Below, one piece after another: positions 34,807-63,919 of a DNA stretch of 64,000 bases. A program made the position numbers and the translations under genes. The notes below the pieces were generated by a model, which was given only the letters and a program-made list of their open reading frames with translations, ran no database searches and had not been told where the DNA came from. This DNA comes from Paramoeba atlantica. Its lineage: Eukaryota; Protista; Discosea. The stretch lies in the NCBI GenBank assembly GCA_977017575.1, contig CDRNVI010000058.1, forward strand, positions 135,003-199,002, given 5' to 3'. Each line of letters starts with the position of its first letter. Within the stretch, counting starts at the first letter, position 1.

Positions 34807-36118
34807 CTCCCCCTCTCATTAATTTTTAATAATATAAATTATAACAAAAATGAAAATTTATACTATCCCCCCCTATTTAATAGGGCTACGTGTCACCCCC
34901 CCCTATAATAGGGCCATTTTTGTCTGGAAGGCCAAAAAAGATTGGTAATAATAATAAATGCCGGTAAGGTGGAATCTCCCAGTTTTGTTCGGATTTCTGT
35001 TAATACCCCCTTGAAACCCTGAGTCCATTTTTTAGAAGACTCTGCATCTTGAAAATACGACGCTGCACGATGATCTTGTATGATGCGCTTGTTATGTTCT
35101 TTGTGAGGAACTTTGGCATGCACACCATCCGTCACCCCCCTCCACAAGAAATGCGCGCGGTGAAGTACACCATCAGCAGATACAAGTATTGTTGATGTAA
35201 ATCCGAGACGCGTCCCTGCAAGCTGTATTGGCTTTCCCTTTGATGCACGTACCCATGTCCATTCGCGGTTTGTTTCATCCAGCTTACAGAAAAATTCATC
35301 CATGTTAAATACGAGTTCTGGGAGAATGTGGGAATTTTATCTCATCATAAAAGGACAAACCAGCCTTCTTCACTGCAGGAGGGGAAACCCATGTCTCTGC
35401 CGACGCGGCGAGCGTGATTATGGCCCGGAGCGTTATCCATGATCACTGTTGCCGCTGGTTTACGCTTTAACCAGTTGTAGAAACCATTTCGTTTTGTCAT
35501 GGCAGAGAGAAACGTTTCATTAGTGACCGTCTCATTCTCCGCAAACTCATGAAAACAGTGAACCTTGGGAACCCCCCATTTTCTTCATCTACAATAGATT
35601 CTAACATTATTCGAAACTCTTCATTATCAATCGCATTCTTACGTATGTATTTTATACGTTCTAACCCTCCTGTCTCCCGGTGGCGTTTAACCCATCGAGA
35701 GACAGTTGCTTCACTGCATTTCATAAGAGCAGCAGTGTCTGTAATCGAACGTCCCTGGTTTTGTACCTCATGGACGCAAATTACACGTGTTTCATGAGTG
35801 ATTTGTTGCGTCGAGAGGGTGCGCCTCTGGCGGCGAAGTGTTTTCGGCATAAAAGATGTGTTAGAAAGAGTTAAGTGGTATTTTATTCATAGATTAATGC
35901 GCTAAAATGATAAAAAATGATAAAAATCCGATTTTTTGCAGAATTTTCGGGTAAAAAATTCAGTAAAATTTTATCATGACGTCATATCAGCTTCAGGAGC
36001 GGCAACAATGGTGCCAGTAGTCTTAAAATTTCGAGATCTGTTGAATGCCGAAGGAATTAGGTCAAAAGCTCGCGCGGTACAAATTTTAGACCCCCCACCT
36101 TTTTCGTGACCCCCCCTG
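34807..36118 (-). mobile_element. Nested degenerate Tc1-like and pogo-like transposase fragments
   Basis: HTH (ALMKCSEATVSRWVKRHRETG), VIMDNAPGH, then pogo-like ELVFNMDEF...FTSTILVSADG. Ends are a TIR like the 45890 family at ~36075-36118 and ta|ctccccctctcattaat at 34807. Confidence 0.7.
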
Positions 36119-36592
36119 TAAAGAAGTACTGCTCTATTTGCGACAGAGAGACGTTGTTCAGCGTTCGCTCCAATTCTTCCTGTCTGGATTGCTCTTCACG
36201 AGGTGATAGTATAACATTATTTTTAGAAGCCTGCCAACATTGTGCTGAAAATTGTGTCCCTGTTGGGAAGAATCTACAATGTATGCTCACAGTGCCATGG
36301 CGCGCAAAGTCCGGAGACATTTGCACCACCATTAGTGGCCAAACTAAGTGAACGTGGGCTTGACATTGATAGAGTCAAGCGCGTTTGTTGTTCTTATGTC
36401 GGGTGGAACATTTGTGGCTGCACCATGTCGTTCTCCCAGGTGGCGCATATAAATTTATTAAATTAAATTTATTATGCATCATAAAAAATTCTGCTAAGGC
36501 TGGGCCCCGCAAGACGTATCTTCGATCAGCCGAGGCAGTTGCTTTTTGGTTGGGACACGCTCTTCAAGGAAACAGTGCGCGAGATGGCGGAT

Positions 36593-37977
36593 TGTCAACA
36601 CCAACGCACCACTTTTTTTCCCAAAAAATAATTTTCTTGTCATTTCCAGTGCACCACTTTTTCTTAAAAACTGTATTCTCATTTCCAATGCACCATCAAT
36701 TATTTAAAGAAGAATTATTTTATAATATCCTTCGGATCTACACTACAAATGCGCCGTTATTCAAGACTCAGTCATTACGATCGTAATCGTATTCAATCAC
36801 TCTTTACATCTGGCGAGAGTCGGCGAAGCATAGCTCGCATAATTGGCAAAAGTCACAGCACTGTTTGTCGCGAGTTGGCGCGTAATGCAAGAAGGGGTCA
36901 GCGCTATGAGGGGACGAGGGCACAGCGCATTTCGAAAAGACGCCTCTCGTGTAAAAAGGTCAAGCCTCACAAGATACAAGGCCTTTTGGAAGAGGAAGTC
37001 AGCTCTCGACTTCAAAAGAAGCACAGCCCGGAACAGATTGCAAATACGATCCGTAGCTGTCGTACCGCCTCGACTTCTACCATATATCGCCATATTCGTC
37101 GCAACGCGTCCTTAGGCGGCAAGTTGTACACCCATTTGCGGATCCGGCGAAAGAGGCCATACCGTCGTCGCACCAGACCTGATCGCAGCGCGATTCCCAA
37201 CCGAACGCCACTTGAAAATCGACCAGAAATTGTTAATAAGCGTCGGCGCTACGGCGATTGGGAAGCAGACTTGGTCGAGGGTCGAGGACATACCGGATAT
37301 ATTCTTACCCTGTGCGAGCGTAAGAGTCGCTTCCTTGTTCTTCGCAAGTTGGAATCTAAGCACGCGAAGGGGGTAAGCAAACAAATTGTAGACGGGTTAA
37401 AGAATTACAAGGTTCAAACAATCACATACGACAACGGAACAGAATTCTGGCACCATGAAGAAGTAAACAAAAAATTAAAATGCAAGTCTTTCTTTTGCGC
37501 TCCATATCATTCGTGGGAGAAAGGGTCTGTGGAACATGCAAACGGTTTGATCCGACAATTCCATCAGAAAACCGAATCTTTTGAGAATTTGAACCAAAGT
37601 GAATTAAACAAAACAGCATTGGAATTGAACACTCGTCCTCGGAAATTATTAAATTATCGTTCTCCAATGGATTTTGTGAATGAACTGCGTAAGTAAAAGA
37701 AGCTAAGTAAGCAAAGGTACGTGAGAAAGCTTGTAAAGTTAGTCTGTTAGTGTTGGAAATTTAATGACATTAAATTTAAGCATTTTGTAAAGGTGAAGAA
37801 ATTCTTGTCTAATAAAGTTTCTTACTCAGATCTTACACTTGTATTACACTTTCTTTAAATACTCTGGATAAGTTTTTATGTTGAAAGGAAAAAGGAACGA
37901 TGTTCAACTATGGTGAGGCGCAGAAAAAAGGAATGACGGTCGACTATGGTGAAAAAAGTGGTGCGCTGGAGTTGACA
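36593..37977 (+). mobile_element. IS30-family insertion sequence, apparently intact
   Basis: Imperfect ~26-bp TIRs tgtcaacaccaacgcaccacttttt / aaaaagtggtgcgctggagttgaca, flanked by AT on both sides (2-bp TSD). Confidence 0.9.
36749..37696 (+). CDS. IS30-family transposase (DD33E)
   Basis: STVCRELARN, HSPEQIA, STIYRHI, RRYGDWEADLVEG, LCERKSRF, TITYDNGTEF, CAPYHSWEKGSVEHANGLIR, LNTRPRKLLNYRSP. Confidence 0.96.
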   Translation: MRRYSRLSHYDRNRIQSLFTSGESRRSIARIIGKSHSTVCRELARNARRGQRYEGTRAQRISKRRLSCKKVKPHKIQGLLEEEVSSRLQKKHSPEQIANTIRSCRTASTSTIYRHIRRNASLGGKLYTHLRIRRKRPYRRRTRPDRSAIPNRTPLENRPEIVNKRRRYGDWEADLVEGRGHTGYILTLCERKSRFLVLRKLESKHAKGVSKQIVDGLKNYKVQTITYDNGTEFWHHEEVNKKLKCKSFFCAPYHSWEKGSVEHANGLIRQFHQKTESFENLNQSELNKTALELNTRPRKLLNYRSPMDFVNELRK

Positions 37978-38488
37978 ATGGGGTGGTGCACTGGAGTTGA
38001 ACATCCGGGGATCTTTCAAAAACATTGCGTCGAATTTGGGAGTCCTATCGAGGACGTGAATCTGAGCTTCGAAAGGAGCAGCGCGATGCCCTTGTAAAGA
38101 AAGTTGAAGAACGCTTGGTTGATAAAATTGATGATTTTAAGATTGTTCGAGAAAAAGTTCACCGCGCTCAATCTTTGATCGAAGATTCTTCACTATCTGT
38201 CGAAGAACTTTTTCAACATCTTAAAGATAAGAAAGTTTTGCGAGAAGAAAAAGAGGTTCTTCTGCGGCACGTTAAGCGTCCCCAACCCCAACCACTTGCA
38301 GAAGGAAAGAAGGAAGAAAAGAAAGGTCGGACACGTATTATTAAGGGAGCACTAAGTCAGAATACATTGAAGTTCTCAGTTTCCTTGAATTAAGTGAAGT
38401 CTTTAAGGTGACGAAAGTTTTATGGAGTTGACCTTATACACGCATGTTCTGTGTTTGTAGCCTAAGTATGTAGATCTGGTAGGAAAGA

Positions 38489-38902
38489 ATGTTTTTTCGT
38501 CGAAACGGAAAATCATATTTCTTTCAATATTTTTTGAGAATGCCTTCTGAACTAATTGTGTGCGGTCTTACAGATGCCACTCTAACCTACCTTGAGCGCC
38601 TCGGGTTTGACAAAGAAGAAATTTTTGCGTCATTTCTTTTCTTGCGGACCGGCGGGAATTATGTAACTGTTTCCGATCATCTAACAGCAAAATTTAAGCG
38701 CGGGTGGAGCGAGAAGTCATGTGCAACCAAAATTCCGGAGTTTTTTCAATCGTTATATAAGGATCTACGTCAAAACTGGCTTGAACCGCGCAATGACATT
38801 CTCTTTGACAACTCTAATGGAACGGACGGTTTTTTAAGCGACGATGTACGTATGGTGGTTGACACAGTTCCACTTTATGTAGATGCTCTAGATGATTGCT
38901 AG
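38489..38902 (+). mobile_element. Harbinger/ISL2EU-like transposase fragment
   Basis: HTH_Tnp_4-like EEIFASFLFLRTGGNYVTVS followed by VRMVVDTVPLYV, resembling the first catalytic Asp strand. Confidence 0.45.
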
Positions 38903-39317
38903 AAAGAAGTTCAGACCGATCTCTACCCAATATCCCTCGAGCCATGCTTGCAACCAAGGATGCATCAACAGGTTTGTTTAACACATTGTACATCTTAATG
39001 CCATCTAAAACATCATTCTTTTCTGCATCCGTAAGCATATCTTTTCGGCCACGCTTGCCGGAAGGAGCATGGTCCTTCAAAGCATAGGCACTTCGTTCAG
39101 ACATTTTCTTACCGTGCGTTTGATTCCAAATCTGCATGCTAGTCAAAACGGAACAACTCTCACAAAGTGCTTGGAATTCACGTACTTCTTCATCACTCCA
39201 CGTATTTCTCTTTGCTTTGCGCGATGAGCGTTTAGCCTCAAGTTCCTCCACAAGATCTGCCACATGCCGTGATACGTAAAAATTGTTTGAGGCAAGCGTC
39301 GACTGCGACGGGGCCAT
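38814..39317 (-). mobile_element. pogo/CENP-B-like HTH fragment
   Basis: GKRGRKDMLTDAEKNDVL...NKPVDASLVASMARGIL. Confidence 0.45.
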
Positions 39318-39663
39318 AGCAGGAAAAAGGAATCAAAAATGAAGAGTTTCTCCACAAAAAATAAAAAAATTAATTATTGCACTAATTAAATGTGCAATGA
39401 TTTTTCACCGCAGTAATTATGGATCGGACGGTACCTGTATGCGCTTTGATTTCATTAGATATTTCTTCACTCTGCCATGGTAATGCATCTACAAAGGCCA
39501 AAATTTACCTGGAAGTGTGTGACACGCGAGGCCTTAGAGGAAGGTGGAGGCGCAAGGCAAAAAGGCAGAAGGCGTAGACTTCTGACTTTTTGCCGCGGCG
39601 ACGACGACTTCCTCGCGTGGGAAGCTGTAAGAGGTCCTATGGAGCATGTTTCGATGGCTATGT

Positions 39664-39855
39664 AACCCAGGCTAAAGTGGACGAGCGAGATACTAAAGGC
39701 ACATTTGGCAAACTACCACAAAACTGGATCAGTATCTCCCGCTAAATTCTTGGGTCACATCAGAATGCTTAACAAACCGGGGGATACCGTTCCAGTTTTG
39801 TGGTAGTTTGCCAAATGTGCCTTTACTATCTCCCTCGTCCACTTTAGCCTGGGTT
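39664..39855. mobile_element. MITE with ~63-bp TIRs
   Basis: aacccaggctaaagtggacgag...accacaaaactgga / tccagttttgtggt...ctcgtccactttagcctgggtt; TSD not clear. Confidence 0.82.
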
Positions 39856-40576
39856 TATTTATAAAAATTAATGAGAGAGGGTAGGTGGAAGGACGTGATA
39901 CAGCACTTTAGCTGATAGGATGAACCAATTTGTTTCGCTGTAAGGATAGATTGCGGGTAAACAAAGACGATAATTATGAGATGTTAACGATAAATATTTG
40001 CTTAAGCGCCCATAGAGTAATGAACGGAGGGCTAAGGTACAAAAGGCAGATCTTCACTTTCTGGAGAAAATTCTTCCTGTCCCTTCGTCTCCACAAACGT
40101 GATTATACGCCGATTTCTACGAATTTCTTCTTGATCAGCGATGCGCTGCGGGAAAAAATAAAAGCCAAGCCCCTTGTCCGAAGTGGAGTTCAAAAGTTTC
40201 GAGGACATAGAAATAATGTACTTCAGAAAAATTTGAAAGGGTATGACTCAGAACGAAATTATAAATTTTTGCAGAAATATAAATCTTTGCAAAAAAATAC
40301 CAAAGGTCATTTATTAAAATTAATGAGAGGGGGAATAGTTCAGTTTTTTTATCGTAAATTGCTATACAAGTAATATCTACTAATACTAAGTAATACAGTT
40401 TATCTTGGCGTATTGATGCACTTCTTAAATCGAAAGGATATCGCGATCAAAAAGCCTAAATGTACGCCTTGCAAAACATCAAGAGTAAAACATGCTCCTT
40501 TGAACCATTTATCTTTAAAAAAAATTACGAAATTTTCCTTTTGGGTCATTTTTTTTATCAGGGCCCACGGCTCATA

Positions 40577-40860
40577 GAAGAGGGAGCCGGGAACTGGCAC
40601 GCGGACTTCGAAATGATACGTACAGTGCCAGGCGCGCTGAACGAGCAGCGAAGAAGTCCATGCTGAAACGCCAGCCGCGCCCATGCATGATTAAAGGAGA
40701 GATTAAAGACAAAGTCGTGTCTCTCCTACGCAGGTGCTTTAGCCCCCAGCAAATTACAGTAGTTTTGCGCAAAGAAGATGGTATTAAAGTATCCCGAACG
40801 TCAATATACGGGTTTATTAAGCGGGATGATGGTCAACATGGGAACTTGGAGAGTTTGAAA
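40577..40860 (+). pseudogene. IS30-family transposase N-terminal fragment
   Basis: SRELARG..Y.ARRA, LLRRCFSPQQITVVLRKEDGIKVSRTSIYGFI aligns with the 48632 copy. Confidence 0.8.
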
Positions 40861-42373
40861 ACAATTTTCCTAGCTCATCTTTTCTCTCCCGGAAACGGGC
40901 GTATTTTTACTATGTTAATGCCCGTTTCCGGATGGCGCTAGGAGAGGAACTGTCCCTCTTGTCGCAAAGTAGGGGTGCGCCTCCCTTCCCTCATCTCCCA
41001 CCACCCCGCTCGGAACACGGTTCCGAGTCCCCATGCGCTGCAGGACCCTTCTACCATACCTTTTGTGGGTCCGTGGGTCCGGACCCACGACCAGGGTCCG
41101 GACCCACGTAACAGCCGTAATACACTCAATATTACACTTAATATTGTATACACTCAAATCTTAATGCCGGTTATTTATAAAACTTTATCAAAAACTTTTG
41201 GGATATATGCTAATTCGCCAGCGATGTTGGTTTTGGAATCATACATGTACCATATGTACTGTATTCTTTAATTCTTTTATTACTTGAAGCTTTGAAACCT
41301 ATTTCTTAGCCAAATCTTATTTGATGGAACATTCTTCGCTTCGTCCGACGAACATTGACTCAAGTCAAGACCTACCGCCGGATCCACGTCGGAGACGATT
41401 GTCCGGGCGAAAATTCATGACGGAAGATGCCTTCCCACAATACCTCTCTCTCGTGCGATGTGCATCAGATTGTATGTACTCTCACGAAGGCATACCGTTA
41501 AATACCAACGGCTTTGAGCAGCACTACGAGTGCAATCATTGCAAATGGTCCTCGCACGGCAAGTATAAAAATCATTGTCTGGAGCATCGTCGTGCTTGTC
41601 TGGATAAAATTTCTTCGGAGCGAACTTCGGATCTCTGCGACCATGTGTGGATTGTCATACTCAGAGGGTTGAAACCTTCCCAGGCGCTCCCAGTGAAAAC
41701 CTATGGAGTCTGCACTTGGAGATTTTGAAAGGGTGGGTGAGATTTCAGCTCAAGGTCGTAAATTTGGGAAAGTAGTAAATGAGGTCGTTGCTCCACTGGG
41801 CAGGATACATGTCCTGTAAGGTCAACGACCCATTATCTCGGCGCATGAAACGCTCCAATGCTTGCCCCTTTAGGCAAAATTTAGTATACCGTACCCACTT
41901 AGTATACCTACTAGGTATCCTGGAACATGGTATATTTTGCTTTTAAGTGACGAATGTAAGTTATAAGACGTGAGTAGGGAGAATAACATCTGCAAAAAGT
42001 ATATGCATTTTAGAGAAAAAAGTACGCTCCCAGGCGCTCCCATCCAGTTTTAACCCTCTCAGTGCAACAAAAACGAGAAAAATATGGGTGTGTTCCGGAT
42101 GTCAGGATTTTCGCATACTCAGTGCAACGCTGTTTTTTCGGTCGGACAGCACCACGAACGGACGCGGGATTGTATGAGACATGTTAAGAAAGAAACAATC
42201 GATTAAGATAAAAATGGATTAAGATAAAAAATTATATAAGGAGAAGAAAAAAGGAGTACCTGGATAATCGATATTGACGGAACAACATAACGCGTTTCTT
42301 TAGTAAAGAGATGAACTTTTCGCCTTTACTGCTTTACAACTTACGGCTATACAACTTACTGCTTTCATGTATA

Positions 42374-45318
42374 CCGTATACCCCCCCCCCCCGTAATAGA
42401 ATGGGTTTTGGGCCAAAATGGCCAAATCTCTGTTACTGGGGGGTGTATGCTTTTTTGGGGGAGTAACTTCAGGACACTGGTCCGGACATGGAATTTTGTC
42501 ACCATGGTACTCCCCCTCTCATTAATAATTATAATTATAATCTATAAACCTTTTTAGTTTATAATTATAATTATAGTTTATAATTATTAATGAGATTCGA
42601 TAAGTGATTTTTTCTTACTATGGACTTCAATTTCTTGATTTTCGAGACACTACGTTCAACTTGGAAGCAATTTTTAGTGCAAAGTATGTGGTACAGGTGT
42701 CTTTGTAGATAAAAAATGATGAATTTGAGGTTTATAATTATAAAAGTGAGACTCAGAATTATAATCTCATTAAATTTCTATAAACGATCCCTTTAATGAT
42801 TTTTGGAGGTTTATAATTATTAATGAGAGGGGGAGTACTATTTTTTCGAAGAAAAAAAAATTCTTTTTCACTCAGTTGTATTCCTTATTAATGATTTTCT
42901 ACTATCAATAGTAAAAAATTTTCTTGTCAAATTTTCCTGAGTTGCATGGTGCAAACTATTTGCTCCTGCTGGAAGGGTAGACCCCCAGCCCCTTCGCCTC
43001 TTCTCCATCCCGTCTACTTCTCTCCCTCCCCTTCTTTGCCTTCGCCTTCCGTCTCTTCTTCTCTATCTCCATCCTCTTGTCCCGTCTCCTCCTCTCTCTC
43101 CCCTTCTTCACCTTCGCCTTCCGTCTTTCCTCCTTTATGTTCTTTGCCTTCGCCTTCCGTCTCTCCCTCTCTTTCCCCCCTTGTCCCAGACTCCTCTTCT
43201 CTCTCCCCTTCTGCACCCCCTGTCCCAGACCCCTCTTCTCTCTCCCCTTCCTCTCCCCTCCCGTCTCACGCTCCACGCCATACGTTGGATGCGTACTGGG
43301 CTAAGAGATCACGGAGTATGGAGAGGGAGGTGATCCCAAGGGCTAGTGGGCCCGTAAGTAGTTCAGTATTGGGTTTTGGAGCGAAAGTATTGTGTGTTCA
43401 AGAGGGGATTGTTAGGAGAGGGGGGCATGTTGAAGAACATATAAAACGCAGGATGTATTTTCATACCAGTTTATCAGTCAAATATTCCTGGTTTTGATTT
43501 CCCTTGTTTATCTACCTCTGTAGAAGAGAAAATGAAAAAAAGACAGGAAGATGAAGAAAGCGTTATTGTGGACATAGAGGCAACAACACAAGTTGCTTCT
43601 TCTGAATCAATAATCGCGAGGAAACAATATACTTATAATGAAAAATTAGATAAAGTGAGACGATACATGGCAGCCCCCTGGGGGCAAAGAGATAAGCTTG
43701 TGAAGGCAAGTGGGGTAAAGTACGGAACAACGGCAAGTTGGATGGCAAATTATGAAGATATAAAGAAGGCTGTACAACGAGGATTTGGCACCCTTACAAA
43801 GTTAATGCCACTCGTAAAATACAAGGAGCTTTTTGAACAAGCCTACAAATACTATTGTACCGCACGTGAAATGTTTTCTGCAGTTCCTATGTATCACATA
43901 CGATTGTACTGCATGCAAAACAGCGAAGAATTTTCAAAATTAAAAGTAAAAGATCAGTATTTTAGGATCGGGGAATTTGAAATGCATTACGGGTTATCTG
44001 CTAGGCGTCGTACAGGCTTAACCCAACTTTTACCTTCTAATTTTCAAGAGAGACATGAGGCTCATTTTCGAGTTGTAGAAAATTCTTTAAAAGACGAGTG
44101 TTTCCCTGAATTTATTATTCTTTTGGATGAGACGGGTGTTTTATGGAACCCTGCTCCTACAACAACTTTAGCTCCAAAGGGTTCGAAATGTGTTCCTATT
44201 AGAATAAAATACGAGAAAAAACAGTCAACTTGTCTTTTGTGGGTTTCAGAATGTATTAAAAGAAATGAAAAAGGTTACGAAATATTCAATGCAAAATATG
44301 AGAATCCTTATATTATTTTTGAAGGAAAAAAGGAGTGCCAAAGATCTAATTCAGTGGAGAGTAAGGTAAGGAAGGCTGTTGAACAGAAGCCTACGTACGC
44401 AGAGGTTAATCAAACGGGGTTTAAAATTCGTTGAAAAAATTCCCAATTGTTATAACAAGAGGGCGTGGCTTATTATGGACAGATTTTCAGCCCACCGCAC
44501 AGAAACAGTTGAAAACGCAATAAGTAATAAGGGATATAAAATTTTTTATATTCCTCCTGGTTGTACTTCTATTCTGCAATTTCAGGATGTTTATGTGAAC
44601 AAACCATTCAAAGATCGTATTAGAAACTTTTACACCAAGCATTGTATTGAGAAAAATAATAATGTAACGAGAGAGCTTGTTGTTCAATGGGTAGTGGACG
44701 CCCAAGCATCATTAAAATTACAAATGATAGAAAGTGGAATAAAAAAGCTTGTATTAAGAAATTTTGTAGGAGTTGGAGAAGAAACAAATGTCAACCAAGG
44801 GACAGACGCGGATCTTCCGACGGAAGTGCAAGTGGCGCTTTTAGAAGATGAGCCGCAGGATCTGTCCTTGGTTGCCGTTGCAATATCTTTTGCCGAGGCA
44901 GTCCAGCCTGAAGAACATGGCTATGAAAATATAGAAAGTGATTAGCTTGCATAACATTATCGACTTCTATTTTAACTGTCATGACAGTTTTTTAGATGTC
45001 GTATCAACAAACTTCAAGTAACTTTAGTAACTTAGCTTTAGTCTCTCTTTCATCTTCTTTTAGTCTAAGATCTCTTCTAATCATGAGTAAATGCTTTCGT
45101 TTGAGCCACCACCACCCAACCCGTCCAGCGACCCATGACGCCCAGCCTCCCCTGTCACCCCCCCCCCCAACCCCTCACCAAACCACCCCCGACGCCAGCC
45201 TCCCCGGACCGCCCAACCTCTCACCCAGCCATCCCCGACGCCAACCCCCCCAGCCACCCAGCCTTCCGAGCCGAACCTCTGTTACTGGGGGGGGGGGTGT
45301 CTTACTGGGGGTATACGG
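42374..45318 (+). mobile_element. pogo-superfamily DNA transposon (DD35D) with TA TSD; transposase 43532-44945 frameshifted once
   Basis: TA|ccgtataccccc...gtaata / ttactgggggtatacgg|TA; LLDETG, LIMDRFSAH, IPPGCTSILQFQDVYVNKPFK. Confidence 0.88.
42510..42835. mobile_element. 326-bp MITE with TA TSD inserted in the pogo element
   Basis: TA|ctccccctctcattaataattata...tataattattaatgagagggggag|TA; same TIR at 34807 and ~40318-40335. Confidence 0.88.
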
Positions 45319-45364
45319 TAGTACCGTCTCTTCATAGTAAAATTTGGCCTTCCAAGCTCTTTGA

Positions 45365-45778
45365 GGAGACCCATTTCAAGCCTGCCCCGAACATAAGGCC
45401 GCCTTCCGCGGATCCGTAGGCACTTGTGAAACTTCCCCCCATTGTCTTTGTCTCGACAAACAAATCGATAGATTGTGGAAGTGGATGGTGAACCTTGTGA
45501 GCCAACAAGTGTATATCCTATTAGCAACCTGCTCCGGGCTGTGAAGCTTTCGGAGACAGGTCTTTACACTTTTTTCAAGACTGGCTCTAATTTGACGTGG
45601 TCTGGTCCCTTTATTGACCAGTCGTCTCTTGGCAACACGATGGGCACGGCTAGAACGGTATTGCCCACCTCTTTTCCTGTTGCGTGCCAGCTCACGACAT
45701 ACCGTACTTGGGGACTATTATGTAGAAATTAACCTTTTGTTGCGCTGAGTATGACAATTTGTTGCACTGACATTGACA
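45365..45778 (-). pseudogene. IS30-family element 5' fragment with tandem TIR-like ends
   Basis: Manual translation gives STVCRELARNRKRGGQY, LHSPEQVAN, TSTIYRF, LRIRGRRPY; upstream tgtcaatgtcagtgcaac and tgtcatactcagcgcaac. Confidence 0.82.
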
Positions 45779-45889
45779 ATCCACCATGCACCGTACATGG
45801 ATAAAGTTAAGCCTTTTAATACAAAGGTTTTACCATGCTTATACGCGATGACAAACCTCCTGGAAGTAGATACATATGGTTTTTAAATA

Positions 45890-47461
45890 CAGGGGTGAAA
45901 ACTTCCATCTGGGGGGGGGTCTAAAATTTGTAAAATTTGCTCAATTTTGTAAAATAATAGCGCATTGGAGAGCTCTCGCAGAGTTGTATGTCTTTGGCGT
46001 ATTCGGAACGCTCGACTTGAAAGATTTAATCTGATGACAAAAAAATAATTTTTTTTCTTGTGAAAATATGGCAATTTTTTGTTTTTCCCCATTTTATGCC
46101 TCAAAAGCGAGTTCGCTCAAGGACTTCCCGTGGTGTTTTGAGCGCACGCTCCTATGCCTCACCAGGGAAGATTAAGGAAAGTCACAGGATGCTTCTTGTG
46201 GCGGACTTTGAGAAAACAGAGTCTTATTCCCGGACTGCCCAAAATTTTGGTGTCCACGAGGGAACTGTGAAACTCTGGGTGGAAAGATTTAATTGCACTG
46301 GCGACGTGGCCAGTCCATCCCCTACGCGTCAACCTAGGGTCACCACCTCTGATCTTATGAAAGTATCTTTAAAGCTTATTGATGACGCTTATCGTGACCT
46401 TCCTTATGGTATCTCCACTTGGAGCGAGCTCTGGAGAGAGGTAAAGCGACGTGGCTTCACATGTTCAATAACATCCCTAAGGAACATGTTGAAAAACTCA
46501 AAAGAAAAAATTGTGCTCAGAACAGCTTTAAAGACCCTTTTCTTATCTAATAATCATAAGGAGCGCAGAGTGCAATTTGCCACTGAAGTGCTACAGTGGA
46601 GCGACGCTGCGCTGGAAAATATTATTTTCTGCGACGAAAAAAAATTTACGTGCAAAAGATCCACCCGACCCACGTACCTTTGCCGAAAATCTGACCCCCC
46701 CAAAGAACAAACAGGGGAATTAGAACCCTAGCATGGTGGAGAAGGTATTATGGTTTGGATGGGGGTGAGCTTAAAGCATGGGTTTCATTTACACGTATTT
46801 CCTACCCATGATTCTCAAGGAAACAAAGTAACTGTAAAGGGACAAAATTTTTATGAAGCCATGAAAAAAAAGGGGGGTCTGTTCCAATATTTAAGGAGAC
46901 ATCGGGCCACAATAGTGATGGACAATTGCCCGGCACATAATAAGGCTCGTGCCGCGGCCCAAGAAAAGGGTTATTCTTGGCTCCGATGGCCAGCACGATC
47001 CCCTGATCTAAACCCCATAGAAAATCTTTGGTCAATAATGGACGGGACAAAGGACCGAATTCAACCCAAAAATCAACAACAATTACTCTCCGCAATTCAT
47101 GATTCCTATGATAAACTTAAGACAGAACAAATATCCAAATTTGAGAATACGCTAAAAAGCTTCAGAAAGCGTTGTAGAATCATTGTAGAAAAGAACGGTG
47201 CACATTGCGGATACTAACAGGGGTTACTAACAATCTTTTTGGGGGGAAAAACGTTATTTTTTAACTTTTTTGTATCATTTTTCAAGTGACAATTCGAGTT
47301 TTTGACCTATTCGGCATTTGTAGTTCCACTTTGATATGTTAAAAGCTACCAGTACGAAGACATACAACTCTGCGAGAGCTCTCGAATGCGCTATTATTTT
47401 ACAAAATTGAAAAGTTTTTACAAATTTTAGACCCCCCCCCAGATGGAAGTTTTCACCCCTG
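45890..47461 (+). mobile_element. Tc1-like transposon (DD32E), ~110-bp TIRs, TA TSD; transposase 46060-47217 with one TAG
   Basis: TA|caggggtgaaaacttccatctgggggggg...ccagatggaagttttcacccctg|TA; IIFCDEK, VMDNCPAH, WPARSPDLNPIENLW. Confidence 0.92.
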
Positions 47462-47463
47462 TA

Positions 47464-47985
47464 TGTATGAAAGTCTGCGACTTCCCGTCTCATCAGAAAT
47501 GCTTTTGCAGGCACGTCCCAAAGTTCTCCACGAAATGCACGCACTTACCGCTAGACTGGCGGACGAATTATGGAAAATTTTGTGCTCCGACATTGACACG
47601 TATTCCTATGTTGGATTGGCCGTAGACACGGGTATTGACCGTGTAAAAGCTGAGCACATAATGATCGTAGTGCTTTACGTGGAACGTCACGAGTATATTC
47701 TCCCTCCTATCTATTCCACCAGACACAAGGCGTATGATGGCTATGCCATGGCCAAAGAGCTTATGGACTGTTTGTCAAGTAACTTGGGGGAAGAACGACT
47801 TCTCAAGCTCGAATTTTTAATGGTGGAAGGTTCTACGGTAAATCACGTTGCCCGTGTTCATTGTGAGGGATTCCTAAAGACAATCTACGATCGCATATCT
47901 CTTGTTGGTGACAATGATCTGGAAAACATAGAACTTGGTGTCAATCGGTTGTGTCGGGTCTCACTTTTGTCTTGCGTAGGTCATA
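47464..47985 (+). mobile_element. hAT-like transposase fragment (interrupted by the Tc1; 5' part at ~45790-45887)
   Basis: Removing the Tc1 restores DDKPPGSRYIWFLNMYESLRLP; then YVGLAVDTG, FLMVEGSTVN and CVGH (CxxH-like). Confidence 0.55.
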
Positions 47986-48150
47986 CAGTGGTTTCAGTTG
48001 ATCTTGCCCCCCCTCGGAATTTTGATTTTGATTTATCCGTTTTTGCTCATCTTTGCAGCATTGGAGAGATCTCGTTCCCCTAGCGAAGAGCTTTGCCGCC
48101 TTTTTTTCATAGAGACCCCCTGGTGCCCCCTGGGTGACCCGAAAGTTGAC
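47986..48150 (-). repeat. Solo TIR of the Tc1 element at 60795-62518
   Basis: ta|cagtggtttcagttgatcttgcccccc...gggtgacccgaaagttgaccaaaa matches the reverse complement of ~62355-62518. Confidence 0.88.
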
Positions 48151-48338
48151 CAAAATGAAACCCAGCCCAGCGACCCCCACCCGCTCAAACACCCCCTCCC
48201 CCCTTCACCCACCCTCCCGAACCAAATCTCTGTTACTGGGGGTCAGCCCAAAAATGGTCAAATCTCTGTTACTGGGGGGGGGTCTATTACTGGGGGGGTA
48301 TACGGTAGTACCGTCTCTTCATAGTAAAATTTACATAC

Positions 48339-48592
48339 CAAGCGGCACATTGACAATACATAAGGCACATTGATAATGCATAAGGTGTATTGATAATGCA
48401 TAAGGCACATTGATATTGCATAAGGCACATTGATATTGCAAGAAATTGGGCACTTTTGTATTGCATAGTAAGCGGCACATTGATAATGCATAAGGCATAT
48501 TGATAATGCATAAGGCATATTGATAATGCATAAGGCATATTGATAAGGCATAAGGCATATTGATATTGCATGAGGCACATTGATAATGCATA
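48339..48592 (+). repeat. 20-bp tandem array (gcacattgataatgcataag)n
   Basis: About 12 copies; same motif family at 55555-55645 (inverted), 56655-56695, 60100-60235, 60660-60780, 62965-63060. Confidence 0.9.
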
Positions 48593-48631
48593 ATCGATTT
48601 TTTTCTAATTTCCACTTTTTTTTGTCGGGCA

Positions 48632-49330
48632 ATGTCGAACTTCAATAAAGTGAAAACGCGTCTTGATTCGGATGATCGAGCGATGATAGAACTGTTGCAT
48701 AACCAACAAGAGTTTTCTCAAGAGGAGATAGCGGAGAAGGTAAAAGCCTCTCAATCTACAATCAGCCGGGAGTTTGCCCGGGGCACCTTCAAAGACGTTT
48801 ATCACGCGAAGCGCGCCCATCTTGCGTGCAGTAAAGCGATGTCAAAGCGCAAGGGAAAGGCTTACAAAATCGAAGGTGACGTGGAGGAAAAGGTGATCCG
48901 TCTATTGGAACGACGATTTAGCTCGCCGCAGATCAGCGTGGTCTTACGTAAAGAAGATGACGTTAAGGTGTCGCGTGTCGCAGTGTACGGTTTTATCAGG
49001 CGTGATGAATCCCTCGGGGGAACACTGTATAAGTGCCTGCGTCGAGGCGGTGGTCGAGGCCGTCGCCTGCGCGGCAAAAGCCGTTTTAAGATCCCGAATC
49101 GCACAGACATTAGCGAAAGGCCCAATGTTATCAACACGCGGGGAAGATTTGGTGACTGGGAGTGCGGCCTAATAGAGGGGTCAACGCACAGTGGGTTCTT
49201 CCTAAGTTTGCTGGAACGGAAAAGCAGGTTTGGTACACTAAAGCTACTGCGCACGAAGAAGAATGAGGTCGTTGCAGAGGCTATTGGTAGCGCCCTGGAA
49301 CACTATCTTGTTCATACGATTACGGGCTTG
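48632..49330 (+). pseudogene. IS30-family transposase, 3'-truncated after first catalytic region
   Basis: SQSTISREFARG, RGRFGDWECGLIEG, LLERKSRF, VHTIT then breaks into palindromic sequence. Confidence 0.9.
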
Positions 49331-51050: not shown

Positions 51051-51112
51051 TGCTTTACATATTTTGCTGGGACTCAGGGCTCAACCTGACTGGTTAAAAA
51101 AGCAACAAAAAA

Positions 51113-51144
51113 AACGATAAAGATACAGTTTCTGTACTTTGTTG
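51113..51144 (+). other. Spliced-leader (mini-exon) relic
   Basis: aacgataaagatacagtttctgtactttgttg resembles the conserved 3' part of euglenozoan SL exons (GATACAGTTTCTGTACT.TATTG); not followed by the GT of the SL intron. Confidence 0.8.
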
Positions 51145-51188
51145 ATTTCTTTTTTTAATCTAGTCTTCTCTTGGGGCTCAGTTCTCCT

Positions 51189-54890: not shown

Positions 54891-56929
54891 AAGGGACATG
54901 CGACGTGTGCCACAGAGCCGGCACTGGTGCTGGTTGAGTCGACAGAGTCTATTCTCACACCTAGCTCGCGAGGGCTAGGTACCCCAAGTGAGGTGGTACA
55001 CGGGTTGTGAATCTCCTCCCCGTCGACCAGCATCTTGTTTCGCGACCGTGTCGCTGTCGACACAGGCCCGCGCCTGCCCCCTCCCGTATAACAAGGGAAA
55101 GATTCACAAGTCAGGCCGCGGAGAGGTCGAAAGACCCGGTCCGGAACGCGCGGATGGATTGGGCGTGGATTGCTTCTTTATATTATTGTTGTTATTATTG
55201 TTATTATTAAATAACAATAATTAAATTGTTAAATTGTTATTATTAAATACTTCTGTGGAAAGAAAAAGAATTGCTAATTTGATTGCTCGTTTTCAATTCA
55301 TATACCACCGCTAAATCATTCAATTCGCGCGACCCCCGCTAAATAGGGGGGGAAGGTGGTAGTTGTGGGGTATGGAGGCCTCTCGCAACTCCGGGGCCTC
55401 ACCGGGAGCAAAGGTGAGATCCACTTGCCGCCCCGCCTAAATGCATTTTTCCTTTTTTTCTAAAAACTTTTTTGAAGGGCCTTTCTTCAAATTTTTTGAA
55501 GGGCTCATTTTTTTTTGAAGGGCTAACTTTTTTTTCGAAGGGCTTGCACAAAATATGCATTATCAGTGTGCGAGTTTTATGCATTATCAGTGTGCGAGTT
55601 TTATGCATTATCAGTGTGCGAGTTTTTATGCATTATCAGTGTGCTAATTGCGGTGGTTGTAAAACTACCGCTCTACCCTCGATTATTGAAAAAAAAGTGA
55701 ACAAAAACAGTGAAAATATAAAGAGGAACACAGTAATATAATAGAAGAAAAAAATATAAAAGAGGAACACAGTAATATAATAGAAGAAAAAAATATAAAA
55801 GGGGGCTCCGGTGGTCCAAAACTGAAAAAAAAAATTGAAAAAAATGGGGGGTCCAGGGGGGGTCATGGTCGAGCAATTTTTTTCGAAAAAATTAGTTTTC
55901 GAAAAAAAACCGCAGAAAGGGTAGCCGGGGTCTTGGCGCGCATTTTCCACCCCCCTACTCGGGGGTGACCCCCCCGCGTATCCGCAGGACGGGTCCGCGA
56001 AGTTCGGATTTTTTCGGAAAAAAAAATTTGAAAAAAGTTCAACTTGGCGAAAAAAATGGCAAAAAAAATATTTTTCCAAAATCGTTTCCCCTATTGTATT
56101 TTGATAGTTTGGGACCTACACTAGCTTTCTCCGCAGTTGTTTTCGCAAGGTATCCCTTTTTCGAGCCGTGGTGCGCCCCTCAAAATGACCCATTTTTGAT
56201 TAAAAAAGGTGAAAAAGTATTTTTGGGACCCCAAGGGGCCTTTTTATGTCGAAAGAATTGTGTGGTTGGAGGGGAAAGGTTACCATAAATCGTATAAGTA
56301 CCATAAATCGTAAGTTACCATAAATTGTATAAGTTACCATAAGTTGTATAAGTTACCACAAATTGTATAAGTTACCTAAAATTGCGTGGTCACATAGTAA
56401 AACAATACACAATCCTGCGAAAGGGGCAGACATAGGTTTTCAGTGGCGCCCCCGAGCGCTGGAGCGCGCGGGGTCGCTGAAAAATATAATTCTGTCCCAG
56501 GGCTACGCTCACAGTTGGGCCTTGCTCGCAAACCGGGGCTTTTGCTTCTAGAAGTGGGTTACGCTCACAGTTCGGCCTCGTTCGCAAACGGGGGCTTTTG
56601 CCTCCAGAAGTGAGCTACGCTCACAGTTGGGCCTTGACTCTAGATGGCGCCCGCACATTGATAATGCATATAGCACATTGATAATGCATACCACATTTGT
56701 AGCACAAAAACAAGGACTGGGTTTATTGGCCCGGCCGGCCCCTCCGTGCGTTCGGCCTCTCATATTCCCCAAAACAACTACCACCTTCCCCCCCATTTAT
56801 CAGGGGTCGCGCGCGCGACCCCCGCTAAATAGGGTGGAAGTCAACGAATATTACATAAGTAAAGGAATAATGCATAAGTAAAGGAATAATGCATAAGTAA
56901 AGGAATAATGCATAAGTAAAGGAATAACG

Positions 56930-59079: not shown

Positions 59080-60794
59080 GCCGCCTCACTTTTACGAGTG
59101 AGGTTCCCAGTGCGAGGCAAGTGGGTTTCGAAGTTGTTTCCGGACCCGGTGATCTGCACCTTGCTTAGTGATCTTCTTGCGCGAATGATTTGGAGGTCGT
59201 GGGAAAGTGGAAAAGGAGACAGGGGGTAGGGGAAAAAGTTAAGCGGAAAACGGGTAAAGGTAAAGTGGGTAAAGGGAAAGTGGGTAAAGGGAATGTGAGT
59301 AAAGGGAAAGTGGGTAAAGGGAAAGGGGGAAAGGGAAAGTGAATAAGTGGAAAGTCGTTAACGGGAAAGCGGGTACGTGGAAACGCGTTAAGGGGAAAAA
59401 GTGGGTAAGATACGGGAATGTTAAGAAATGAAGTAGGAAAGTCGTTGTAGTATAAAAGAAAAGTTAGAATTCGTAAAAAAAATAATGCGACAAAAAAAAA
59501 TTTAGGCTCCAAAATATGATATTGCTAATTTGATTGCTTGTTTTAAAATCGTATACCCCCCCGATGGACCTACAGGGTTCAAGTATTGGGTAAAAATATA
59601 GAGGCAATGCCGCGTTTCATACTTCTCCCCCCTTATTCATTGCAAAAAAAAAACAAAAAAAAAGTCCCTCTGCAGTATTTCCCTCTCGCGTCCCCCACCC
59701 CCGTGCCAGCAGCCCAAAGTATTATATACTTGCTCACGGGGTGGGGGCAGAGATCCTGGCGGATGGGCTCGTGCGTCGCTTCCTCTTGCCCCCGCGTCAG
59801 TCGCCCCGTGTCTTTTCTCTCCGCGCTCTTCCCCATCGGTGCGACGGCGTCTTCGCGTCTCATCACCTCCAAGTCTCCCACCCACGTACAGCAATCTAAT
59901 GTATCTAATACTGCTAACGGGGTGGGAGCAGAGGTTCTGGATCATACAGGCCTGGGTGCGTGCGGATTTGGAAGTGGGGTAGGGAGTAAGAGAGGGGAAG
60001 CAGGAAAAGGGGTAGGAAGTAAGGGAGGGGAGTAAGTGGAAGCAAGGGAAAGTTGGAAGTGTGGATATTGTGGAAAAGTAGGACAAGTACATAAAAAGCA
60101 CATTGATAATGCATACTAAGCGGCACATTGATAATGCATATAGCACATTGATAATGCATATAGCACATTTATATTGCATATAGCACATTGATAATGCATA
60201 TAGCACATTTATATTGCATATAGCACACTGATAGCTCATACGTGTTTTTACTTGACCTTCAGAATTTTATTTGACCTTCAGAATGTCAGTTTCCCAACGT
60301 AAAACTAAACGCCTAAACACCAAGGCCCGGGAAACTATCGCAGTGCTCTATAATCAACAAGGCTTCTCAGGGGTCGCTCGCGCGACCGCCGCTAAATAGG
60401 GGGGGAAGGTGGTAGTTGTGGGGTATGGAGGCCTCTCGCAACTCCGGGGCCTCACCGGGAGGAAAGGTGAATTTATTTAATTCCATTTTTTGGCAATGTT
60501 AAGAACCTAAAATTTCTAGTCAACCTCAAATTTCGCGAACACCAACCAAAAATGATCATATTTTTTAAGGGATCAATTTTTTTTTAATGGGTCAAAACTT
60601 TTTTAAGGGCTCGAAAAATATTTAAGGGCTCGATTTTTTTTTCAAGTTTTATGCCAGATAAAGGTGCGGATTTTATGCAATATAAAGGTGCAGCTTAATA
60701 TGCCATATAAAGGTGCATTATGCAATATAAAGGTGAATTATGCAATATAAAAGTGAATTATGCAACATAAAGGTGCAGCTTAGTATGCAATATA

Positions 60795-62518
60795 CAGTGG
60801 TTTCAGTTGATCTTGCCCCCCCCTCGGAATTTTGATTTTTTTTATCCATTTTTGCTCATCTTTGCAGCATTGGACAGATCTCGTTCCCCTAGCGAAGAGC
60901 TTTGCCGCTTTTTTTTCATAGAGACCCTCTGGTGCCCCCTGGGTCCGAAAAACACTGTTTTTTTTGACGTTTTCTGTGTACACAACCATTTTTTGTCACA
61001 TTTTCCCGATTTTTTGTACATTTTGAACATGTAAGTACGAGTAATAGTGTTCTAAATTGATAATTTGAAAGCTCTATGTCTAGTACCATCCCTATCGCCT
61101 AATTTAATATAGTCAACAACTCTACATTATGCAGACCAGACCCTCTAACCCCAAACAGGGGGAGTACGTACAGGGATGGAATGACAAAAGAGAAGACAAT
61201 CCCCCAATATCCCACAAAGGAACCGTGGCATTACCTCTTTGCGAGAGAAAAGAAATAATAAAGCAACACAAAAAGGGATTAAGCATACATAAATTATCTA
61301 ATAATTTCGGACGTGACCGTCGCACCATAAGAAGAATTGTTAACCTGTGGAAGGAAGGAGAAGATCTTACACCCCAAAAATCCCCAGGAAAAAAATCATC
61401 AAGGCGGTTTAAGGACCTTGTAAAAAAAATTGTGGATGATGAAAACGAAACGTACGATGGTTGCTTAACTTATACTTGGATACACGAGCAAGTGCTGAAT
61501 ATGGGGTATAAATGTTCGTTAAACAAAATAAGAACTATTTTGAAAAATATTGATTACGGTAGATGGGATAAGTCGCCGAACTGTGACCTATCTGAGGAAC
61601 ACAAGTCGCAGCGTTTGAGATTAGCAAACGAATTGCTTACATGGCCTAAAGAAGATTTAAACAAAATCATTTGGACCGATGAAAAGTTGTTTACCTGTGC
61701 GGTTCATGGGTCTCAGTTTTTCATTGGACCTAAAGGGTGCCAAAGAAAACCTCGCTGCAGAAACCGTAGGTGGTATGGGGGGAAGGGGGTAATGGCTTGG
61801 ATGGGTATTAGTGTAGAACACGGATTTTTCTTGCACGTGTTTGAACCCATTTATGAAAACGCGCACAAGGTCACTGGGGGAGTGATCCTTGACTCCTTTC
61901 AGAAGCCTAATGGGTTTTTACATTATCTCAAAGACCACGTTGACAATGTGACTGTGCAAATGGATAATGCTACCACCCATAACTTGGCAAAAGGTGAATT
62001 GATTAATTATCGTATTAAACAATTGTCTTGGCCAGCGAATTCGCCTGATTTAAATCCAATATAAAATGTTTGGAAACAAATGAACGGTATCATAAAGAAA
62101 AAAATTAAGCCCCACAAACATGCTACCCTCGCCGATGCTATTAAAAAAGCTTTTCAGATTCTAAAACGTCCTCAAGAAAAACGTAAAGTGTGCAACACAA
62201 TTGATCCAGTCCCTAATAGACTTCAAAAAGTGTTGCAAAACAATGGAGGCCATTCCGGATACTAGTTCTTTTCCTTTAGAGTTAACTTTTGGACATAAAA
62301 TCCGTTTTTCGTTTCATTTTTGATATGGTAAAAAATATCATTTTTTATTATTTTGGTCAACTTTCGGGTCACCCAAGGGGCACCAGGGGGTCTCTATGAA
62401 AAAAAGGCGGCAAAGCTCTTCGCTAGGGGAACGAGATCTGTCCAATGCTGCAAAGATGAGCAAATGGATAAAAAAAATCAAAATTCCGAGGGGGGGGCAA
62501 GATCAACTGAAACCACTG
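60795..62518 (+). mobile_element. Tc1-like transposon (DD32E), ~155-bp TIRs, TA TSD; transposase 61129-62265 with TAA at the catalytic Glu
   Basis: TA|cagtggtttcagttgatc...gatcaactgaaaccactg|TA; IIWTDEK, QMDNATTH, WPANSPDLNPI*NVW. Confidence 0.93.
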
Positions 62519-63301
62519 TAAGTGGCCACTTTTTATGCCAGATAAAGGTGCGAGTGGGCTTCGCAAATTGCTTCCCACTAACGACACACATTTTTGTCTT
62601 GGAAACGGGTAAACAAGGTCTAGGCTTTGCTAGGGGTTGGATGTGGTGTCTGGGTTCATTCGCCCGGCCGGTCCCTCCGTGCGTTCGGCCTCGCATATTC
62701 CCCAAAACAACTCCCCCCATTTATCAGGGGTGGCTCGCGCGACCCCCGCTAAATAGGGGGGGAAGGTGGTAGTTGTGGGGTATGGAGGCCTCTCGCAACT
62801 CCGGGGCCTCACCGGGAACAGGAATGAAATACTAGCGCTCTTTAACTTGTTTCTCCCCTCCACTTTTTTTCTTTTTAACTTATTTCCCCCCCTCCACTTT
62901 TGTTTCATGGGGTCGATTTTTTTTTCGAGGGGGGGTCACTTTTTTTTTGAGGGGCTCACCAAAAATATGCATTATAAGGGTGCGAGATTTATGCATTATA
63001 AGGGTGCGAGATTTATGCGTTATAAGGGTGCGAGTTTTATGCGTTATAAAGGTGCAAGTGGCTAGGCACAAAAACTTAAACGTAGAAACAACAACCTAAC
63101 AAGGATATATAAGAAATAGTAAAATATCCATGTAATTATAGAACACAAATCATAATTTGAAGAAATTATGTGCCCCGAAGGGCCAGCAGGCAAATACATA
63201 ACAGCCCCCCGGCTAAATTTCAAAACGTGGACTATTATTATCAGTGTGCGAGCGACTATGCCTTGCCAGTGCGTGTACTGCTTTATCAGTGTGCCGCTTG
63301 A

Positions 63302-63689: not shown

Positions 63690-63762
63690 GCCTCGATAGC
63701 TCAGTTGGGAGAGCGTTAGACTGAAGATCTAAAGGTCCCTGGTTCGATCCCGGGTCGAGGCA
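63690..63762 (+). tRNA. tRNA-Phe (GAA)
   Basis: gcctcga/tcgaggc acceptor stem, ttaga-ctGAAga-tctaa anticodon arm, ggttcgatcc T arm, TTTT terminator. Confidence 0.97.
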
Positions 63763-63835: not shown

Positions 63836-63919
63836 CCGACCGTAGCTCAATTGGTAGAGCATGTGACTGTAGAACGCGCAGATATCACAGGGTCGCTGGT
63901 TCGATTCCGGCCGGTCGGA
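63836..63919 (+). tRNA. tRNA-Tyr (GTA) with 11-nt intron (63873-63883)
   Basis: ccgaccg/cggtcgg acceptor, tgtga-ctGTAg[aacgcgcagat]a-tcaca, T arm, T-run terminator. Confidence 0.95.

Follow-up and report, generated by a model that had tools for sequence, protein, structure and literature searches.

A probable resident family of IS30-type DNA transposons in the nuclear genome of a euglenozoan

Element A and its assignment to the IS30 family

In a 64,000-nt stretch of DNA, referred to below as the window and corresponding to contig ctg3922l of ENA assembly ERZ24900291, we found a complete transposable element (element A) of the bacterial insertion sequence (IS) family IS30, together with fragments of diverged relatives, among eukaryotic genes and transposons. 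Our reading, to which we give a probability of about 0.8, is that these copies belong to a DNA-transposon family which derives from bacterial IS30 and is resident in the nuclear genome of a spliced-leader-bearing euglenozoan of the kinetoplastid or diplonemid type, with one ancient introduction favoured. Coordinates are those of the window unless another locus of the assembly is named, and the features of the window are collected in Table 1.

Element A consists of a 163-nt leader, a single open reading frame (ORF) and a 313-nt 3′ region. A second copy on a different contig of the same assembly (locus L001) is 98.1% identical to it over 1426 bp, with sharp stops of homology on both sides. The ends of A are imperfect inverted repeats of 27 nt, of which 20 positions match, and have the form GGCGGATT...GCACCAC. 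Three copies of the terminal motif are found at the left end, starting at 36595, 36640 and 36679. A is flanked on both sides by GAT and the L001 copy on both sides by CCT; these are target duplications of 3 bp. The A transposase contains the Pfam domains HTH_38 (aa 3-46, E = 1e-13) and rve, with a second helix-turn-helix (HTH) near aa 88-118, and the residues of its predicted catalytic triad, D174, D228 and E262, the last two separated by 33 residues, were invariant or nearly so in an alignment of 49 sequences. AlphaFold modelled the protein with a mean pLDDT (predicted local distance difference test) of 90.8, and the core of the model is matched by retroviral integrase cores and by the IS21 transposase IstA.

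The subfamily of A was apparently mobile recently. Between A and the L001 copy the synonymous divergence (dS) is 0.044 and the ratio of nonsynonymous to synonymous divergence (dN/dS) is 0.155. In one sequencing run (X1), a contig joins position 36582 to 38010 with three shared letters, which is the form of an empty site with one GAT and fits an insertion polymorphism of A. Another run (X2) contains one contig, at depth 49, that joins 36614 to 36831 and represents an A-type variant without the leader and the first ~27 codons; this variant resembles the internal deletion of fragment C, described below.

Assignment to IS30 was made with the NCBIfam model NF033563 (cutoff 80 bits). Full-length proteins scored between 163 and 253 bits: 245 for A, which matches along the entire model, 245 for P0001, 253 for P0123, 252 for P0125, 218 for P0124 and 163 for P0004. 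Membership of IS481/IS481EU was ruled out, with scores of 27-63 bits on NF033577 against a cutoff of 224, and membership of IS3EU was likewise ruled out by profile scores. With respect to the features by which IS30 is known, the N-terminal HTH and the DDE core with a spacing of ~33 residues were both present, and target duplications of 2-3 bp were represented by GAT (A), CCT (L001) and ATC (L002). Terminal inverted repeats of 20-30 bp were found in clade I, one of two clades of these elements (27 nt in A, likewise in L002), whereas clade II departs from this form in having arrays of 20-nt units. The IS30 elements do not have the characters of Tc1/mariner (IS630), given their 3-bp non-TA duplications and rve-type core, whereas the neighbouring Tc1-like elements do.

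Comparison with bacterial IS30 elements

Bacterial relatives were sought in a scan of one genome per prokaryotic species, which returned 80 loci. The best bacterial matches, mostly from Verrucomicrobiota, were 42-47% identical to A, and the nearest IS30s overall were at most 49% identical. Bacterial elements delimited by comparison of copies (in Verrucomicrobiae, Desulfobulbus and Rhodoferax) were 1092-1216 bp long and had one inverted repeat per end. The ends of these relatives start with GGYGGATT or a near variant, and four copies in one genome were flanked by the 3-bp duplications CTG, ATA, GTT and TCC. The ends of A are clearly homologous to those of the bacterial relatives.

The resemblance to bacterial IS30 includes a transposase encoded by a single ORF, two N-terminal HTHs, a DD(33)E core, inverted ends of the form GGYGGATT...GCACCA and a 3-bp target duplication. 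However, A is longer (1424 bp) and carries three end motifs on the left and two on the right, compared to one per end in bacteria. Clade II elements differ further: they are 2.1-2.5 kb long, their ends are inverted arrays made up of 8-24 units of 20 nt each, and an acidic C-terminal tail has been added. The host is here a eukaryotic nuclear genome, and no bacterial member is more than 49% identical. At third codon positions the eukaryotic copies all have a GC content of 0.46-0.55; host genes span 0.39-0.52 and the bacterial relatives 0.28-0.77.

Two clades and their divergence

A quick tree of 94 rows, which included short fragments, contained two clades with 100% support each: clade I, comprising A, L001, C and L002, and clade II, comprising B, D/L006, L004, L005, L007, L008 and three fragments. 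Relic E was also assigned to clade II. The two subfamilies that had been proposed in an earlier note on this DNA, one around 36749 and 45365 (A and C) and the other around 40577 and 48632 (D and B), were recovered in this division. In a careful tree of 64 rows without short fragments, all eukaryotic rows formed one clade (support 72/82, 68% of bootstrap trees), and in a second careful tree, to which ten metagenomic rows had been added, the single eukaryotic clade had a support of 87/91 and was present in 90% of bootstrap trees. One further quick tree also united clades I and II. The eukaryotic clade was nested among sequences from Verrucomicrobiota, Planctomycetota and aquatic metagenomes. The trees with bacterial IS30s that the note had called for show two clades found only in this assembly and joined to each other, and not copies which each group with a different bacterial IS30 lineage, one of the two outcomes that the note had named as refuting its proposal.

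The note had also asked for dN/dS among the copies. Besides the low value between A and L001, the ratio was 0.6 between the dead fragment D and the L006 copy. Between subfamilies, the proportion of synonymous differences (pS) was saturated at 0.78-0.95 and that of nonsynonymous differences (pN) was 0.23-0.32; as dS is not computable at pS > 0.75, only pN and pS are given for these comparisons. Saturated pS together with this pN indicates that the lineages split long ago while encoding a constrained protein. The pattern is unlike that of drifting pseudogenes and is one of purifying selection during divergence. A long residence of IS30-type elements in a eukaryote, with diversification there, is thus probable. 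The "in-genome radiation" and long residence described in the earlier note hold as far as a long diversification is concerned; the radiation may have taken place in this genome or in related eukaryotes.

The ends of clade II elements are built differently from those of clade I. The L007 element has ~10 units on the left and 8 on the right in inverted orientation, the L006 element has 24 units, and the L005 element has eight left units of a different sequence and two right units. The 20-nt units are presumably multiple transposase-binding sites. In several independent left ends, GGCGCCC or a near variant lies just outside the first unit, and if the terminus is set there L007 is flanked by GGT on both sides and L005 by GGG on both sides, which tentatively suggests that 3-bp duplications occur in clade II too. 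No ends were found when inverted repeats were sought around L004 and L006; L006 stops at the end of its contig and L004 has only short 10-nt repeats upstream. The proteins of four clade II subfamilies end in a conserved acidic tail with the pattern L-V-D-S-S-Q-E, which clade I and the bacteria are without. Within clade I, the L002 element is 58% identical to A and has clear ends, with ATC on both sides.

Two further observations concern these loci. The L002 element measures ~4.6 kb between its ends, enlarged by an inserted block with a 733-aa ORF on the opposite strand (L002 11267-13468). The L007 element lies within an inverted repeat, CCCCCCCGTTTAAGCGCAC ... GTGCGCTTAAACGAGGGGG (L007 5678-5714 and 7805-7823), a setting reminiscent of the palindromic targets that bacterial IS30 prefers.

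Relatives outside the window

A word-indexed search with A gave one copy of 98% and one of 58% identity, both from ERZ24900291, followed by metagenomic IS30s at no more than 49%. The same type of search with B gave seven relatives of 52-63% identity, listed from ENA only, with the next sequences at no more than 38%. We also ran a clade II profile exhaustively against 1.84 billion representative proteins, of which 22483 matched. This search added further clade II fragments, for which all of the sources looked up were ERZ24900291, and the next sequences were 41-48% identical. Overall, every relative of more than 50% identity whose source was looked up came from this assembly. Clade II relatives in JGI metagenomes were ruled out, the best match there being 46% identical. 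A giant virus or phage as vector was considered and set aside, as a scan of viral contigs contained no relative.

Host context and alternative explanations

The first 30 kb of the window carry genes for a SURP/PRP21 splicing factor and a protein kinase, together with genes whose products resemble a choline transporter and the small subunit of topoisomerase IB. At locus L007, kinesin/PIG-P and HSP90 genes lie on both sides of the IS30 copy, on a single strand. The IS30 family as so far described is one of prokaryotic hosts, whereas the present copies sit among eukaryotic genes and transposons. Dispersed repeats are common to the window and to other IS30-bearing contigs of the assembly. A 369-aa ORF at 26192-27301 (- strand) has a C-terminal topoisomerase I domain as its sole domain (Topo_C_assoc, E = 1e-22); we take it to resemble the small subunit of kinetoplastid topoisomerase IB, an enzyme made of two separate subunits. 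A spliced-leader-like relic is present at ~51110-51145, with a core, CAGTTTCTGTACTTT, which is of the kinetoplastid type by comparison with the literature; it lies directly upstream of a reverse-transcriptase-bearing region.

The assembly was deposited as an ENA analysis with metagenome-style contig names, and it could be supposed from this that contamination or chimeric assembly had brought in IS30 copies which belong to culture bacteria and not to the protist. However, the copies lie within contigs of 15-206 kb beside genes for kinesin, PIG-P, HSP90 and the SURP factor, reverse transcriptases and Tc1 elements, one Tc1 element is inserted inside an IS30 relic (E), and element A with its flanks is carried by three independent runs from different samples. 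We ruled out contamination on the basis of the eukaryotic gene context and of the repeats common to the contigs, and give it a negligible chance of being right. The second outcome named in the earlier note as refuting its proposal, IS30 copies on contaminant contigs only, was looked for and is not what the gene content of the window and of L007 shows. Independent transfers of each diverged copy from another unsampled bacterial lineage also seem very improbable. IS30 is very abundant in bacteria, as the number of profile matches above illustrates, and a bacterivorous protist meets much bacterial DNA, but the subfamilies, at least eight in number, make up no more than two clades, each with 100% support, and neither clade contains any bacterial or metagenomic sequence. 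The terminal arrays and C-terminal tail of clade II are moreover derived and absent from bacterial relatives, and the base composition is uniform and host-like.

Two independent bacterial introductions, which founded clade I and clade II separately and were each followed by diversification in the eukaryote, would account for the strongly different end architectures and for the 94-row quick tree, in which the clades lie in an unresolved polytomy with bacterial groups. In addition, A is 47-49% identical to some metagenomic IS30s and only 39-44% identical to clade II. We nevertheless regard this history as unlikely, as the two careful trees and one quick tree unite the clades, and multiplied end motifs are common to both clades and not found in bacterial relatives. 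From these sequence comparisons, a single bacterial introduction is favoured over two. It is also rather improbable that the subfamilies diversified outside this genome, in other eukaryotes or in viruses of such hosts, and arrived by several eukaryote-to-eukaryote transfers. Tc1/mariner and other DNA transposons often pass from one eukaryote to another and the searches did not cover other euglenozoan genomes, but no member of either clade was found in other protein-library samples, JGI metagenomes or viral contigs, and several subfamilies have multiple decayed copies in this genome.

Several points weigh against a resident family with one ancient introduction. The monophyly of clades I and II is moderately supported (72/82 and 87/91), and both clades stand on stems of ~0.5 changes per site, for which long-branch attraction is possible; one origin is therefore favoured rather than shown. 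The empty-site allele of A consists of a single small contig in one run, with a depth of 3 compared to ~9-13 for the flanks. In the one RNA-labelled run, nothing was placed on 36000-41000, which informs neither on the presence nor on the absence of transcripts. The clade II duplications need a terminus 7 nt outside the first unit, which was picked after viewing the ends, and one of the two duplications falls within a G-run. Finally, the absence of clade I and clade II members elsewhere applies to the 1.84 billion representatives, the JGI metagenomes and the viral contigs, other euglenozoan genomes not having been directly searched, and protein libraries may under-represent eukaryotic contigs.

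Proposed history and mechanism

The donor was probably related to IS30s which are now found mainly in Verrucomicrobiota. Once introduced, the element would have remained mobile and given rise to at least eight subfamilies, which form two clades. Clade I has retained the bacterial design (one ORF, short GGYGGATT...GCACCA ends and a 3-bp duplication) with extra copies of the end motif, and in clade II the ends appear rebuilt into inverted arrays of 8-24 units of ~20 nt. The HTH domains are predicted to bind the end motifs and the DDE core (D174/D228/E262 in A) to cleave and join the ends, with integration at a 3-bp staggered cut producing the target duplication. Expression of the transposase would probably occur by read-through transcription and trans-splicing, and its import into the nucleus may be assumed. 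Transposition may proceed through a circular intermediate with joined ends, as is known for bacterial IS30; no end-to-end junction of element ends was seen in the contig-level read data.

Relation to known eukaryotic transposons

In the literature searched, there was no report of eukaryotic IS30 elements, of "IS30EU" or of IS30 together with Euglenozoa. In the paper on the Diplonema papillatum genome, TATE, MULE and Helitron elements are listed and IS30 is not. Among 430 eukaryotic genomes, IS607 was the sole IS group found by Gilbert and Cordaux in 2013 (PMC3673617), Kojima and Bao in 2023 described IS481EU of parabasalids without mentioning IS30 (PMC10045372), and a 2026 survey names only the links IS630-Tc1, IS3-IS3EU and IS481-IS481EU. 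Established pairs of a eukaryotic superfamily and a prokaryotic IS family include Tc1/mariner-IS630 and IS3EU/GingerRoot-IS3 (PMC13343696); their eukaryotic side is widespread and old, whereas the present lineage is so far known from one assembly. IS481EU offers a parallel in being a eukaryotic group tied to one prokaryotic IS family with an integrase-like DDE transposase, in one protist lineage and with horizontal transfer proposed, but its duplications are ~4, 15 or 25 bp and not 3 bp (PMC10045372). It also belongs to another IS family, as the present proteins reach ~60 bits on the IS481 model (cutoff 224) and 163-253 on the IS30 model. Eukaryotic IS607-like elements are likewise prokaryotic insertion sequences integrated in eukaryotic genomes, some of them intact, but they use a serine recombinase and are present as few recent copies, in contrast to the deep radiation of several subfamilies seen here (PMC3673617).

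We consider the chances somewhat better than even that these elements represent an undescribed eukaryotic DNA-transposon superfamily, "IS30EU", which arose by a single ancient transfer of IS30 into a euglenozoan, is still transposing and has evolved its ends from simple repeats to long arrays of transposase-binding units. For IS481EU, the rank of superfamily was argued from several families, both autonomous and non-autonomous, whose ends and duplications were seen in eukaryotic genomes and which were set apart as a clade from the prokaryotic members. Here we see several subfamilies, duplications and, in relic E, a deletion derivative; the support for a clade separate from bacteria is 72/82 to 87/91, and only one assembly is known to carry it. 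The suggestion in the earlier note of a candidate new eukaryotic DNA-transposon group agrees with the absence of eukaryotic IS30 from the literature searched and of the two clades from the bacteria searched, with one introduction favoured over two.

Direct links between a prokaryotic IS and a eukaryotic transposon are few (IS630-Tc1/mariner, IS3-IS3EU, IS481-IS481EU and scattered IS607), and a radiated, mobile IS30 would add another. It would show the adaptation of a bacterial element to a nucleus with polycistronic transcription. Clades I and II form a natural series for the change of transposon ends from single repeats to arrays of binding sites, and the intact element A, with a possible empty-site allele, is a candidate tool for insertional mutagenesis in euglenozoans.

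Other IS30 pieces and neighbouring elements in the window

Table 1 IS30-type elements and Tc1-like insertions in the window.
Feature	Position	Strand	Basis or remarks
Target duplication of A, GAT	36583-36585 (left), 38010-38012 (right)		3 bp, identical flanks
Element A, complete clade I IS30-type element, 1424 bp	36586-38009	+	homology with L001 copy stops exactly at ends
IS30-family transposase of A, intact ORF, 315 aa	36749-37696	+	NF033563 245 bits, E = 9e-73
Right end of A, two tandem terminal-motif copies	37953-38009	-	motif scan
Fragment D, internal clade II piece (aa ~28-117), 272 bp, cut both sides	40577-40855	+	tblastn, comparison with L006
Fragment C, clade I	45346-45785	-	left terminus at 45785, two motif copies
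Tc1-like element between C and B, 111-nt inverted ends	45890-47461	+	TA at 45888-89 and 47462-63
Fragment B, clade II	48333-49324	+	left array and codons 1-231 (48632-49324)
Solo clade II right-end array, 4 units	55554-55651	-	unit scan
Solo clade II left end, GGCGCCC terminus and 2 units	56646-56690	+	unit scan
Relic E part 1, internally deleted clade II element	60098-60794	+	84% identity to L008 left end and ORF start
Tc1-like element inside right array of relic E	60795-62518	+	TA at 60793-94 and 62519-20
Relic E part 2, outermost right-end unit	62521-62558	+	separated from part 1 by Tc1-like insertion
Solo clade II right-end array, 4 units	62964-63062	-	unit scan; one more unit 63277-63294

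A tblastn search of the window with the two long ORFs gave four IS30-like stretches (A, matched at 36749-37693, B, C and D) and nothing else above noise. The pieces that the earlier note had placed at 40577-40860 (+), 45365-45778 (-) and 48632-49330 (+) were confirmed in this search, with their limits refined to those of D, C and B in Table 1. Its count of at least four diverged copies was correct as far as it went; relic E and four solo arrays have to be added. It had called the copies decayed, which applies to the other copies in the window, all cut, deleted or frameshifted, but not to A, a complete element with an intact ORF. TA flanks, which it had ascribed to the interleaved Tc1/pogo insertions, were verified for the Tc1-like elements at 45890-47461 and 60795-62518 and not for the pogo-like ORFs at 43532-44945, around which a repeat search gave no inverted ends.

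Fragment B is 39.6% identical to A over 225 aa (E = 6e-36) and scores 123 bits on NF033563, matching profile positions 1-194 of 267, with the domains HTH_38 and HTH_32. On its left, twelve terminal units of 20 nt (48344-48593) form an array directly upstream of the ATG, the outermost unit being cut by a copy of an unclassified dispersed repeat (repeat X) which ends at 48332, and the ORF of B breaks off at 49324, short of the second catalytic aspartate. Fragment C is 54% identical to aa 35-140 of A (E = 2e-21, match at 45714-45387) and clusters within clade I with the L002 copy (61% aa identity). An internal deletion has removed the leader and the first ~34 codons of C, codons 35-~145 (45714-45387) are retained with one frameshift, and the 3′ side of the fragment is cut at 45345/45346 by the end of repeat X. 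Fragment D is 52% identical to B over 88 aa (E = 2e-23, match at 40585-40848), while its identity to the L006 copy (P0123) is 96.7% at the nucleotide and 93% at the amino acid level. Contigs of runs X1 and X3 extend beyond 40855 in the IS30 reading frame, which indicates that a fuller copy or allele of D exists.

In part 1 of relic E, a left array of 7 units is followed by the leader and by 29 N-terminal codons that start at 60283; the right array (60648-60776) is in inverted orientation. Deleting 60795-62520 in silico restores the sequence of the L089 right end. At relic E, and likewise at L008, the left and right flanks do not match and no target duplication was found; the ends are probably non-partners or truncated.

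The same end of repeat X is found at 45274-45345 and 48261-48332 (90% identity over 74 nt), ending in ...AGTAAAATTT. It abuts the truncated side of both C and B, and copies of the repeat are also present in L001 and L002; the position beside C and B may reflect targeting of IS30 sequence or chance. A GC-rich block of 107 nt in relic E (60365-60471) is 97% identical to L007 7431-7537, in the 3′ region of the L007 element, compared to 75-84% for the surrounding IS30 sequence, which suggests that the block is probably a young small mobile repeat.

The Tc1-like element inside relic E contains an ORF (61129-62064) which matches DDE_3 and HTH_Tnp_Tc3_2. A solo left end of the same Tc1-like family is present at 47984-48156, with TA at 47984-85, just upstream of repeat X and B. 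Two tRNA genes at 63690-63762 and 63836-63919 (Rfam RF00005, 68.5 and 59.7 bits) adjoin the last solo IS30 arrays.

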